A stretch of 64,000 bases of DNA from Salpingoeca rosetta (Eukaryota; Protista; Choanoflagellata), in NCBI GenBank assembly GCA_033442325.1, contig JAWQFM010000021.1:1083692-1147691 (forward strand), given 5' to 3'. This document shows positions 34,460 through 41,883 of the stretch, piece after piece. Below the pieces are notes generated by a model that saw only the letters and a list, made by a program, of their open reading frames with translations, made no database searches and was not told the origin of the DNA. The first letter of the stretch is position 1; the number at the start of each line of letters is the position of its first letter. The position numbers and the translations under genes are program-made.

Positions 34460-37400
34460 ATGTCATGGCTCTTTGGTGGCCGTCGCAAACGTGAGTGGCT
34501 ATGTGTGTGTGTGTGTGTGCGTGTCTGTCTGTGTGTCTGTGTGTCTGTGTGTCTGTGTGTCTGTGTGTCTGTGTGTCTGTGTGTCTGTGTGTGTGCGTGT
34601 GTGTGCGCGTGTGTGTCTGTGTGTGTCTGTGTGTGTCTGTGTGTGTCTGTGTGTCTGCGTGTTTGTGTGTCTGTGTGTCTGTGTGTCTGCCTGTCTGCCC
34701 ATCTGCCTGTCTGCCCATCTCTCTGTCTGCCTGGTTGTCTGCCTGTCTGCCCGTCTGTCTGCCCGTCCGTCTGTCTGTCTCTGCCGGTGTGGGTGTTCCC
34801 ACACGTGTGAACTGACCAACACACACTCGCACATGTGCGTCTACCGCTGCACACGGAAGTTTGACTCACCCCCCCCCCCCGCCGCCACAACCTCCTTCCC
34901 CCACGTTTCTTCCAATCGCCACTTCCAACGTGCGCCCTTGCTCACCAACGACCCAGAGCTTGAAGCGGAGCTGCGGCTCACACAGCAACGGCTGCAGGAG
35001 CGTGAAACCGAGGTTGTGGCTCTGAAAAGCAACTGGACCATTGAATTCGATGAGGTACAGCTGCAAGAGCCTCTGAACCATGGCGCATTTGGAACCGTGT
35101 ACTTGGCACAATGGGAAAACCTTCAGGTCGCAGTCAAGGTGCAGCACACTGCAGCGCACGAATTCGACCTGACCGAGGAGTTTGAGCAAGAGGTCGCATT
35201 CATGCAGCGGATCCGCCACCAAAACATCGTGCGGTTCTTCGGCGCCGGGACCACTGATGTAGGCACCGTCTTTTTGGTGCTGGAGTACTGCCCGCTCGGT
35301 TCCGTCGCCGATCTCCTACATCGTCGACAAGATGGCCTGCAAACTGCCCTCTCCGATTTCACAATGGAGCATCCAACCGCCCACAATCACGTGCCGCAGA
35401 CAACGTGGGCCCTAAAGCTTCAACTCGCCCATGACATGGCAGCAGCACTTGCCTTCCTTCACAGCCTTGACATCCTGCACAGGTGCGCCATGCTAGATTT
35501 GGTGCGTGCGTGTGTGTCTGTGTGTCTGTGTGCGTGTGTGTATGTGTGTCTGTGTGTCTGTGTGCGTGTGTGCGTGTGTATGTGCGCATCTGTGTGTGTG
35601 TGTGTGTGTGTCTGTGTGCGTGTGTGCGTGTGTATGTGCGCATCTGTGTGTGTGTGTGTGTGTGTGTGTGTGTGTGAAGTGAATCCAACGGCTTTCAAGC
35701 CGTGGCATCACGTCTGTGCCGCTTCAAAGACGAAAGAAAACCACTCATGAACCGTGTGCTTGCTTCCATGTCATTCATTGTATCTTCTTGGCAGGGATGC
35801 AAAGACAGGGAACTTCCTCGTGTCGAAAGATCTTCGTGCCAAGCTGTGTGACCTCGGCTCGTGTCGCGAACGAGGGGGCATTGCACGACCCCGCGCATCA
35901 CTTGCACAGGACCCGGCGACGCAGCCGACGGAGCATGATGCGTTGGACCCCATGCTCACGGCTGCTGTGGGCACGCCACTTTACATGCCCCCTGAAGCCA
36001 TCGATGGTCACTCCTACAATGGCTCTGCTGACGTGTTCTCGCTCGGCGTAATCATGTGGGAGCTTGGTGTGGAGAAAATTCCGGACCTCATTGAGCAAGA
36101 ACATGGAGGCAACTTTCCGGGACCAATTCTGGCGACAATGGTTCAACTTCTTGGAGAAGGCCACCGTCTCAAGTATCCAGACGACCGCGCGGGTGCGTAT
36201 CAATCGTGCAGGGTGTACATGTCTGTGTGTGTGTCTCTGTGAATGTTTGCGTGGGTGTGCATGTGGGTATGTGTGTGTGTGTGTGCGTGTGTGTGTGGGG
36301 GGGGAGGACCTGTGTCTGTCTCGTGTGTGTGTGTGTGTGTGTGTGTGTGTGTGTGTGTGTGTGTGTGTGTGTGTGTGCCTGTGTCTACCTGCCTGTGTGT
36401 GTCTGTGTGCCTGTGTCTGCCTGTCTATCTGTGTGCTTGTGGTTGTCTGAGTTGCTTGTTGATGAGTGTGGTTCTGGTCTGAAAACAAACCAGTGCAACC
36501 GATTGCAATGCGTGAGCTCAAGCAGCGCCGGACCGTTTGACACCGCAGATATTCCATCGTGGTACCGAGACCTGTCGTACAAGTGCATGGCCAACGATCC
36601 TGATGAACGCCCAACCGCGAAGAAACTCGAGCATATCTTCAACACCCGTCTCTCCGAGGTGTCTGTGTGTGTGTGTGCGTGCGTCTGTGCGTCTGTGTCT
36701 GTGTCTGTAACTGTGTCTGCAGCTCTATGTGTGTGTGTGTGTGCGCGCGCGTCTGTGTCTGTGTCTGTGCCGATGTAGGTGTTTGTGGCGGCGCGTTTTG
36801 GTGTCAGGAAAATCCGTGCGGTGACACCCCCCCCCACTGCACTCACTCCTACGTGCGAATGCCCTCCTGCTGCATGGGCGACTGTGCATGTTCCAGGCCT
36901 TGGCTGCTGGTGCGCTGCTGTCCACCGTCGCTGGCAGCACCGGGGCGAGCAATGATCCAGCCGCGCAATCCCGCGCCACAGCCGACACGAGAGAGGAAGA
37001 AGCGGAGGAGAGCCGCCAAGAAGAAGAGCAACGCCAGCAACAGCGACGTGCATTTGTTCACGCTGCGCTGCAGAATGCGCTCGACGAAGGCGCGAGCGAT
37101 CTTCTGCGGCGAAGCAAGTTGATGCTCGTCGGGGAGGGCCGGGCCGGCAAGACGAGCACCCTACGGTCCTTGCTGTCGAAGCCATTTGAGCAGCACCAGG
37201 AATCCACCGCTGGGTCCGAGTCGACAGACATGCGCGTTACCGTCGACAGTCGTGACGTCTGTGGCTGGCAGGTCCGGGAGCAACTGTGTGTGAACTTGTG
37301 TGCCTGTGTGTGTGCGTGTCTGTCTGTGTGTCTGTGTGTCTGTGTGTCTGTGTGTCTGTGTCTGTCTGTCTGTCTGTGCCTGTGTGCGTGTGTGTTTGTG

Positions 37401-40400: not shown

Positions 40401-41883
40401 GTTGTTGTTGTTGTTGTTGTTGTTGTTGTTGTTGTTGTTGTTGTTGTTGTTGTTGTTGTTGTGTGACTGGTCTTGCATACAACCCAAATTACACGTGCGT
40501 GTTCCTTCACATGCGCGCGCACGTCTTGCTCAACTCATTTTCTGTTCAACGCCTGCTCAACAGACAATCTGCCAACAGTGCATTTGTGATGAACATTCGT
40601 GCCCGGCTTGAGGAGCGCGGCCTGTCCACGTTCCTGGACGCCAACAACCTCGAAATTGGGGTCAACTTCAAGATGGCGTTTATGGAGGCCATCAGCCGGA
40701 GCGTTGTGGCCTGCCCGATTGTGTCTGCGGCTGCGTTGGAGCGCATGCGCCGCCTTGGCGAGCAGGACGCTTGTGATAACGTGCTTTTGGAGTGGATGAC
40801 CATGATCTCCCTCATCCGCCACGCCCACCACGCACGCAGCACAGACTCACAAGCCCGTGGGCACCGCACCAGCAGCAGTGTGGGCCGCACCATGAGTCGT
40901 GGCGAGCAAATGACAGAGTCTACAACGTGCACCGGCAGCCACAGCGGTGAAGGAGAGACGAAGCATGTGCTCCTTTGCAGGGTTGCTCCGCTGTTGCTCG
41001 GGAGGGTGTGGGATGATGATCAAGTGACCGCTTGCCTCCCCGAGTCAGACACGTTCCAAGACCTGTTTGATCTCTGCCAACAACTACCACACGTCGTCAG
41101 TCATGCAACCATGACTCAACTCGAGCACTTCTTTGTCAGAGTCCTTGGGCTTCCGCCTCCGCCACCTCTCACCGTGCATGAGACTGTGGCCTCCCTCTTG
41201 GATCATGGTGCAATCTTTTGCTTCGATGATCAAGGGCATGACGCCTCTGCAATTGAAAGTGGGGAAGCATCACGCAGTATTCTGGAGCGACCCGCCAAGT
41301 GGGATGCCCTGCACGAACACGCAGAGCATATTCGGCGCCTAGTCGAGCATGTCCGCCCATTGAATCAACAACAACAACAACAACAACAACAACAACAACA
41401 ACAACAACAACAACAACAACAACAACAACAACAACAGCAGCAGCAGCAGCAGCAGCAGCAGCAGCAACCTGCGATTTCTTGTGGCTTTGACATTTCAGAG
41501 GTGAGGTCCAAATGCCCAGCCGTAGCACCCACCGTGTGCTTGCTTTTGTGTTGGTTCGCTGGGTCAATATGCTCCTGTGTGGACCTAACACCTTTTTCTT
41601 GTTGCTTTTGTGATTGCATACGCAGATGGACGGAGAGCTTGTGGTGTGGCTCAGGCAATGCCAGCTTCTCCGAAAAGTTGGCCCAGCGCTCGATGCTCTC
41701 GGGGTGTCGACACTGGCAGATCTGCATTATGGGATCAAAGAAGAGCTGATAACGCTGGAGACGCTGCAAGCGCACGGCGCGAAGTTAATTCCGGCTTCAC
41801 GACTGCTGAAGGCGGCCAAGGACTGGGTGCAACAGCTTGGGGAGCAAGTTCCCCACGTTTCCGACATTATGTTCATGTTCTGA
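34460..41883 (+). CDS. ROCO-family protein: TKL-type kinase - Roc GTPase - COR - TIR - polyQ - SAM-like. Exons 34460-34490, 34957-35482, 35795-36192, 36549-36658, 36897-37271, 37589-38184, 38401-40326, 40564-41500, 41626-41883
   Basis: GCCACCATG start. Kinase: [38 protein letters not shown]. Roc: [31 protein letters not shown]: VPLAW, DPQWL, FLVPALL, FLPEGLF. TIR: HVFLSYR...TFLD...DNVLLEW. All junctions are phase-consistent. The 3' end is uncertain. Confidence 0.85.
40345..40461. repeat. (TTG)n microsatellite in the intron that splits the TIR domain
   Basis: Near-perfect trinucleotide run. Confidence 0.95.
41366..41467 (+). repeat. Coding (CAA)n(CAG)n polyglutamine tract, 34 Gln
   Basis: In frame within exon 40564-41500. 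Confidence 0.9.

Follow-up and report, generated by a model that had tools for sequence, protein, structure and literature searches.

A candidate kinase-Roc-COR-TIR-SAM gene in the choanoflagellate Salpingoeca rosetta with a receptor-kinase module in the place of leucine-rich repeats

What would a receptor-type protein kinase do at the head of a Roc-COR GTPase that ends in a TIR and a SAM domain, and do these parts form one gene at all? The question is raised by a locus of the choanoflagellate Salpingoeca rosetta, located at 34460-41883 (+) in a 64,000-nucleotide stretch of genomic DNA (GenBank assembly GCA_033442325.1, contig JAWQFM010000021.1, positions 1,083,692 to 1,147,691, forward strand); this whole stretch is referred to as the window, and positions are counted within it. 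Choanoflagellates serve as a reference point for the origins of animal innate immunity, and S. rosetta is genetically editable. The locus is likely to represent an intact, probably single gene of a lineage-expanded cytosolic family, which resembles the nucleotide-binding leucine-rich repeat receptors (NLRs) in its layout of a sensor, a Roc-COR switch, a catalytic TIR, and a SAM domain; in this member, the leucine-rich repeats (LRRs) would have been replaced by a part of a receptor kinase.

The first-pass annotation of this DNA had described nine phase-consistent exons at this span and a product with a kinase, Roc, COR, TIR, a polyglutamine run of 34 residues (Q34), and a SAM-like tail in that order. 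The exons, which were placed by eye and checked by script, are bounded by GT-AG splice sites, have compatible phases, and are free of stop codons, amounting to 5157 nt of coding sequence (1718 codons and a TGA at 41881-83). The eight introns are 125-466 nt in length, each starting with GT and ending with CAG, and (TG)n-type repeats are abundant in them. Homology searches, Pfam scans, and structure models were all run per single exon. The exon-wise Pfam matches, together with a SAM assignment based on paralogs, uphold the described order of domains (Table 1), and the glutamine run was counted at exactly 34. The Roc motifs G1, G3 (DLGGQ), and G4 (GTHAD) can be read in the exons, and Roc is followed by COR, the succession by which ROCO proteins are recognized. 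The same annotation had reported neither an LRR nor a transmembrane sensor, and the homology and hydropathy scans agree: no LRR was found by Pfam in the exons or by homology upstream within the window, and a hydropathy scan alone gave no transmembrane helix, the maximum 19-residue hydropathy (KD19) being 1.52 with the peaks within folded domains. Furthermore, Pfam matched no ARM, Ank, or Death domain in any exon. An additional upstream exon for an LRR ectodomain or a membrane segment, as would be expected of a "Kinase TLR" with Roc-COR, was also considered and rejected, as no homology to it was found in the window.

The Roc-COR-TIR-SAM part of the product has many relatives in the same genome. 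Single-exon searches located about 40 TIR loci of this type and at least 37 Roc-COR loci, nearly all of which adjoin a TIR locus, and the nearest paralogs are 34-66% identical to the gene studied here. All 30 TIR loci that were fetched share a phase-2 intron after "..SYR" (between R and Q) and the motif CDNVLLEW; the corresponding junction here is 40326/40564. Most paralogs follow the layout LRR_6(+Ank)-Roc-COR-TIR(-SAM), as in PTSG_11903 (P0004; LRR_6-Roc-COR-TIR) and PTSG_03500 (P0006; LRR_6-Ank-Roc-COR-TIR-SAM), both of which map onto this assembly with 100% identity over most exons. The LRR_6 (RNI-type) N-terminus of most paralogs is absent here, and a Barroeca monosierra protein, EP01147_P008734 (P0153), is likewise LRR-free, so the LRR is not universal in the family. 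In PTSG_02681 (P0003, 1593 aa, contig C4 region), Roc-COR is accompanied by a C-terminal PNP_UDP_1 domain (1270-1492) and only a partial TIR match, which points to effector swapping within the family, as in NLR-like proteins. In UniRef, PTSG_11903, PTSG_03500, and PTSG_09165 (P0004, P0006, and P0007) are named "non-specific serine/threonine protein kinase", a label at odds with their Pfam matches, which are to LRR/Ank, Roc, COR, and TIR and not to a kinase; it is probably an automatic error of naming ROCO proteins after LRRK.

Beyond S. rosetta, a TIR of this type follows COR in 47 of the 150 nearest Roc-COR cluster representatives (among 1.84 billion), which come from the choanoflagellates S. 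infusionum, Hartaetosiga balthica, and Barroeca monosierra, the cryptophytes Guillardia theta and Hanusia phi, and environmental eukaryotes. Throughout the family, an insert of about 100-150 residues separates switch I of Roc from G3 (37589-38100 of the window; residues 160-250 of P0153); it is not part of canonical Roc, and its end is conserved between this gene and B. monosierra (LEKAVTELTLHA in the latter). The insert end and G3 in exon 6 align with P0004, P0006, and P0153, and in exon 5 the paralogs and P0153 align up to 37271. By analogy, the combination of sensor repeats, a nucleotide switch, and a TIR would resemble the layout of NLR-type receptors, with Roc-COR replacing the ATPase. 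Related ideas have been put forward for brown-algal ROCOs (in the available part of PMC11378527) and for COR-linked GTPases in prokaryotic conflict systems (PMC7159879).

The putative effector of the gene is the TIR domain, which was matched by Pfam in exon 8 (TIR_2, 4.9e-6). The AlphaFold (AF2) model of this exon, with a predicted local distance difference test (pLDDT) score of 79, lacks strand βA, since βA is encoded in exon 7. The top VIA-align matches of the model are all TIR domains (Z 7.6-9.0), including RPS4 (9.0), C. elegans TIR-1 (8.6), RPP1 (8.3), and SARM1 (8.3); Foldseek against the PDB returned no match at E ≤ 0.001, and the fold is called on the VIA-align matches. A phmmer search of exons 8 and 9 against PDB sequences gave nothing useful. 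A 27-member family alignment contains ten invariant columns, including the D..LLEW core, and the Glu of CDNVLLEW is invariant. When the TIR family profile was compared with the PDB, the TIRs of Roq1, L6, and SARM1 were matched (E 0.002-0.02), and the E of LLEW was aligned with E642 of SARM1 "DWVHKEI", a marginal alignment at E 0.02. The Glu codon at 40790-40792 had been assigned to the SARM1-equivalent position in the first-pass annotation, an assignment that is corroborated both by its alignment with E642 and by its correspondence to Glu1118 of F2UB80, a paralog for which activity has been reported.

The TIR of F2UB80 (a protein of 1352 aa, TIR at 1034-1255) produced cyclic ADP-ribose (cADPR) in E. 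coli and activated type VII Thoeris, and the catalytic residue is given as Glu1118 (Hurieva et al., 2026, bioRxiv 10.64898/2026.04.20.719644, Table S4); mutation of the catalytic residue abolished cADPR production in all cases (same preprint, section 8). Counted along the printed construct, residue 1118 is the E of DNVLLEW, and the TIR sequence of F2UB80 matches locus L029 of this genome over the stretch compared. Identity between F2UB80 and the present gene is approximately 37% over 242 aligned residues of the TIR-plus-extension exon and approximately 53% over the first 87. The F2UB80 TIR is reported for cADPR and is absent from the TIRs named as NAD+ depleters (Hurieva et al., 2026), so that, by analogy with this paralog, a signal-making role would be at least as likely as a SARM1-style drain of NAD+. 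The earlier idea of a TIR NADase has accordingly fared in two ways: Glu-dependent cADPR synthesis has already been shown in the paralog F2UB80, whereas the notion of a SARM1-style drain has been weakened.

Exon 9 has no Pfam match and no PDB sequence match of its own. It aligns with the C-termini of paralogs, and its domain occurs downstream of the TIR at 15 loci; SAM_2 was matched by Pfam in 5 of 12 paralog tails (best 5.5e-6) and in P0153 of B. monosierra (4.3e-7). Modelled alone, exon 9 forms a bundle of five helices (pLDDT 83); the structures that Foldseek ranks closest to it are SAM domains, at E above 1, such as the p73 SAM (template modelling score 0.80 on the target, root-mean-square deviation 1.8 Å). 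No PDB match was obtained by Foldseek at E ≤ 0.001, and the SAM tail profile matched only the ANKS1B SAM in the PDB (E 0.15). Exon 9 is accepted as a SAM domain because of the Pfam matches in the paralogs, and these, along with the five-helix model, bear out the SAM-like tail that had been read from the letters of the DNA. A complex prediction with two SAM copies scored 0.00, which counts neither for nor against self-association. In the paralog at L004, polyglutamine lies on both sides of the SAM.

The kinase leads to another family of S. rosetta. It keeps the motifs VAVK, αC Glu, HR/DAKTGN (the slash marks an intron), DLG, and PPE; its glycine-rich loop lacks the first Gly, as does that of the receptor-kinase paralog that was read. 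The closest solved kinase is plant CTR1, a TKL kinase. A family of about 85 matches in S. rosetta, mostly located in open frames of 1100-1500 codons, shares 45-47% identity with the kinase, and the member inspected (G000:C27) comprises LRR_8 repeats, a membrane segment, a juxtamembrane stretch, and a kinase. Homology to the LRR-transmembrane-kinase paralog begins exactly at the exon-2 acceptor (34959), in the juxtamembrane stretch, and the intron after HR is at the same position in the receptor-kinase paralog (one intron position compared). Both receptor genes compared end just past the kinase, with the stop 4 codons beyond "RLAE" in one and at roughly that place in the other; here, a GT donor directly follows "RLSE" and the closing stop of the paralogs is missing. 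Judged from sequence comparison, exons 2-4 are the cytoplasmic part of an LRR-transmembrane-kinase receptor gene, placed where the Roc-COR paralogs have LRRs, and the simplest history would be that the cytoplasmic half of such a gene replaced the LRR exons of a Roc-COR-TIR-SAM gene.

No kinase was detectable with these kinase exons among the 150 nearest Roc-COR cluster representatives, and when coordinates were compared, none of the other 36 Roc-COR loci had a related kinase on its own strand in the 10 kb upstream, the lists of loci and of kinases both being lower bounds. A second kinase-bearing family member was rejected on this ground. As for the receptor kinases themselves, at least 17 of the 85 family matches lie on contig C27 of genome G000, where two receptor-kinase genes on opposite strands converge within 7 kb (L031, C27:785000-792000); the receptor kinases of this contig look like a clustered, expanding family.

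It is considered distinctly probable, from the sequence around intron 4, that the kinase and the Roc-COR-TIR-SAM part are fused in one gene. The intron 4 junction is phase 0/0, the intron is typical of the gene in length and composition, and a pyrimidine-rich run accompanies the CAG acceptor at 36896. The homologue of exon 5 in PTSG_11903 is an internal exon, which opens at a CAG acceptor 96 residues ahead of the P-loop and closes at ..NWQ/gtgag, and exon 5 has kept the CAG acceptor. Moreover, the unspliced kinase ORF (open reading frame) would extend by 39 TG-repeat codons to a stop at 36776-78, and only 110 nt separate this stop from an ATG at 36888; a promoter-sized gap is found only upstream of exon 1, and no internal start codon precedes the N-lobe in the kinase exons, the catalytic motifs of which are intact.

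Several observations weigh against this reading of a single gene with a catalytic TIR. The in-frame ATG at 36888-36890 is 9 nt before the exon-5 acceptor and could serve as the start either of a separate gene or of a Roc-COR-TIR-SAM isoform without the kinase. P0153 of B. monosierra (1183 aa) is a Roc-COR-TIR-SAM protein with a short, kinase-free N-terminus, which implies that a kinase-less product is viable. The best match to exon 7 (38402-40324) in a set of 1.84 billion cluster representatives is 45% identical, with none reaching 50%, and a word search with exon 5 matched just two distant Roc fragments; public protein sets seem to lack the locus, though other S. rosetta PTSG proteins are present. 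In addition, a loop of approximately 45 residues after helix αC sets this TIR apart in the family alignment, and its predicted activity is extrapolated from a paralog that is approximately 37% identical.

The first of these points would be accommodated by two adjacent genes, an arrangement that we regard as unlikely: a truncated soluble kinase (exons 1-4, stop at 36776-78) followed by a kinase-less Roc-COR-TIR-SAM gene starting at ATG 36888, with the adjacency an accident of a partial receptor-kinase duplication that landed upstream. The ATG is in frame with exon 5, P0153 has about 107 residues before Roc and no kinase, and the other 36 family loci are without an upstream kinase, all of which suit two genes. 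However, the 110 nt would have to accommodate a 3′ untranslated region, a promoter, and a 5′ untranslated region, and the kinase would receive a Cys/Val low-complexity tail, unlike the paralogs ending just after the kinase. The phase-0 donor located exactly at "RLSE", the CAG acceptor with its pyrimidine-rich run, the length of intron 4, and the internal position of the homologous PTSG_11903 exon likewise speak for splicing across the junction.

Table 1. Coordinates (window positions) and content of the exons and domains of the predicted gene; a slash within a motif marks an intron.
Feature	Position	Strand	Content	Evidence or match
Exon 1	34460-34490	+	ATG, 10 codons, and 1 base; donor GTGAGT; phase matches exon 2	Read directly
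Exon 2	34957-35482	+	Juxtamembrane-like coiled segment and kinase N-lobe to H-R/, with VAVK Lys and αC Glu	PK_Tyr_Ser-Thr 1.2e-21
Exon 3	35795-36192	+	Kinase catalytic loop (HR/DAKTGN), DLG, PPE	Pkinase 1.2e-13
Exon 4	36549-36658	+	C-terminal kinase helix; donor GTGTCT	Aligns with last exon of receptor-kinase paralogs
Intron 4	36659-36896	+	238 nt, kinase-to-Roc link, GT..CAG, phase 0/0	
Exon 5	36897-37271	+	Acidic/Gln linker and Roc G1 P-loop (GEGRAGKTS)	Roc 1.1e-6
Exon 6	37589-38184	+	Roc insert typical of the family, then G3 (DLGGQ)	Roc 0.0079
Exon 7	38401-40326	+	Remaining Roc (G4 GTHAD), COR-A, COR-B, TIR βA	COR-A 7.5e-10, COR-B 0.0067
COR-A	~38951-39325	+	In exon 7	
COR-B	~39845-40174	+	In exon 7	
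TIR strand βA (YHVFLSYR)	40304-40326	+	3′ end of exon 7	
Exon 8	40564-41500	+		TIR_2 4.9e-6
TIR and helical extension (221 aa)	40564-41227	+	First part of exon 8; ~45-aa loop insert after helix αC	
Catalytic Glu (predicted)	40790-40792	+	GAG, the E of LLEW in CDNVLLEW	
Q34 linker	41366-41467	+	Between TIR extension and SAM	Run counted by script
Exon 9	41626-41883	+	SAM-fold domain (residues 1-74 ordered), 11 disordered residues, stop	

In the single-gene reading, the receptor-kinase cytoplasmic part (juxtamembrane stretch and TKL-type kinase, three exons) would be spliced via the 238-nt intron onto a former internal Roc exon. TIR enzymes require contacts between TIR domains for their activity, COR forms dimers and senses the nucleotide state of Roc, and SAM domains polymerise. 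A change of Roc-COR in its nucleotide or oligomeric state, aided by the SAM tail, may gather the TIR domains; the Glu of CDNVLLEW would then cleave NAD+ and release cADPR, with the effect of a signal or of NAD+ loss, and the kinase would act as an input or regulatory module that replaces the ligand-binding LRR. We infer the GTP gating, the SAM-driven assembly, the role of the kinase, and the single transcript in this scheme. In the bacterial CtRoco, GTP is described as driving monomerisation (in the available part of PMC11052575), which would not by itself favour TIR assembly.

The kinase might alternatively be an integrated bait, which appears quite improbable. In such a single transcript, the copy of a receptor kinase grafted in the place of the LRR would be tampered with by a microbe or virus that targets such kinases, thereby tripping the Roc-COR-TIR switch and causing cADPR to be made. 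Kinase domains integrated into plant NLRs are thought to act as baits. The kinase derives from a large LRR-transmembrane-kinase family (about 85 matches) and takes exactly the position of the LRR sensor of the paralogs, and the family has an NLR-like three-part layout with an effector swap (PNP_UDP_1 in PTSG_02681); on the other hand, the kinase keeps all catalytic motifs, so that nothing marks it as a mere decoy. If true, this would be a receptor of the "integrated decoy" type from outside the plants, in the unicellular group most closely related to animals, and its switch would be a ROCO GTPase instead of an NB-ARC or NACHT ATPase.

Upstream of the locus, a KH-domain gene (KH_1 twice, 31398-32648, -) is divergent from exon 1, and the region upstream of exon 1 is a divergent promoter region shared with it; a dynein heavy chain gene (24095-26302, -) lies beyond. 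Downstream, two ORFs of copia-type (RVT_2) retrotransposons are found at 45045-47690 (-) and 49139-53251 (+), in line with the earlier description of the locus as the last host gene before a transposon nest. The segment 48001-50000, located between and over the ends of these two ORFs, has a G+C content of only 25%. A recent rearrangement by the transposon nest could have left a decaying, non-functional chimera with little or no transcription, and the position directly upstream of copia-type elements, the unusual low-complexity inserts (Q34, an Asp/Asn/Ser-Gly run in COR, and the 45-aa TIR loop), and the failure to find the product in public protein sets would be compatible with decay. We nevertheless hold this to be very unlikely: the 5.1 kb of coding sequence in nine exons contain no stop or frameshift, the splice sites are intact, as are the catalytic and nucleotide-binding motifs checked in the kinase, Roc, and TIR, and a gene that shares only 34-66% identity with its nearest paralogs has had time enough to decay in the absence of constraint.

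An intact gene of this kind matters in several respects. In its layout, the family of about 40 copies resembles a repertoire of NLR-style receptors with a ROCO GTPase at its core, and one member is known to make cADPR. The exchange of an LRR sensor for a kinase would be a natural domain swap, from which one could study how receptors of this type trade their input modules. By uniting a kinase, a GTPase switch, and a TIR that cleaves NAD+ in one polypeptide, the gene would furthermore bear on the question, posed by LRRK2 and DAPK1, of how Roc-COR talks with a neighbouring enzyme. The gain would be modest if the kinase were a separate gene.

How the architecture relates to known systems can be stated part by part. 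Roc-COR-TIR is a known and widespread architecture: Roc-COR-TIR proteins of S. rosetta and G. theta are included in Hurieva et al. (2026; bioRxiv 10.64898/2026.04.20.719644), with Roc and COR given in the legend of Figure 3, and TIR proteins with ROC and COR have been noted in Aplysia (PMC9334734). The "Kinase TIR" class of Richter et al. (2018; PMC6040629, available part) combines Pkinase or Pkinase_Tyr with TIR, allows other domains except LRR, and has no transmembrane segment; the present gene fits it if it is one transcript, as both domains are located in splice-compatible exons and no LRR or transmembrane segment is present. The class is a bin of domain content and not a clade, and the available part of that article says nothing of a Roc-COR between kinase and TIR. 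The first-pass annotation had named an already described architecture as grounds against its reading, and these grounds apply in part: Roc-COR-TIR and "Kinase TIR" are known, whereas the literature search found no description of a kinase N-terminal to Roc-COR-TIR-SAM or of its receptor-kinase origin. A search of the literature on choanoflagellate ROCO or LRRK proteins found nothing specific.

Among individual proteins, the closest relative found is EP01147_P008734 (P0153) of B. monosierra, a Roc-COR-TIR-SAM_2 protein that is 61% identical in the exon encoding the N-terminal part of Roc and that falls into the cluster represented by P0001, the best match to exon 7 (45%). It differs in its short basic N-terminus without a kinase. 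It is a gene prediction, and its contigs (3.0 and 4.5 kb) end before upstream exons. PTSG_11903 and PTSG_03500 share the Roc insert, COR-A/B, TIR, SAM, and the exon boundaries at ..WQ/gt and TIR βA; by contrast, they have LRR or LRR and ankyrin in the place of the kinase, and identity over exon 7 is 40-41%. F2UB80 (L029, G000:C13:1705560-1708274) likewise has Roc-COR followed by a TIR with a helical extension, contains CDNVLLEW, carries the phase-2 intron following "SYR", and shows a SAM-like match past its TIR, but it has no kinase match near its locus and no 45-aa loop insert.

SARM1 and TIR-1 resemble the predicted product in the Glu at the aligned position, in structure (Z 8.3-8.6), and in having SAM in the same protein. 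SARM1 is arranged as ARM-SAM-SAM-TIR, whereas the present product is ARM-free, has a single SAM after the TIR, and includes Roc-COR and a kinase. In LRRK proteins, the kinase follows COR; in DAPK1, a CaMK-type kinase precedes Roc and a death domain is C-terminal. The Roc-COR tandem and a protein kinase are common to DAPK1, LRRK1/2, and the gene described here. DAPK1 is similar in having the kinase N-terminal to Roc and an assembly or effector domain at the C-terminus, and differs in that the kinase here is TKL-like and receptor-derived and not CaMK-type, TIR-SAM replaces the death domain, and Ank is absent; LRRK differs in that its kinase follows COR, and the present gene, with the kinase N-terminal to Roc, has no LRR. 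Compared with all these systems, the new part appears to be the N-terminus, with a kinase in the LRR position, the sole such copy identified among at least 37 Roc-COR loci of the S. rosetta genome.

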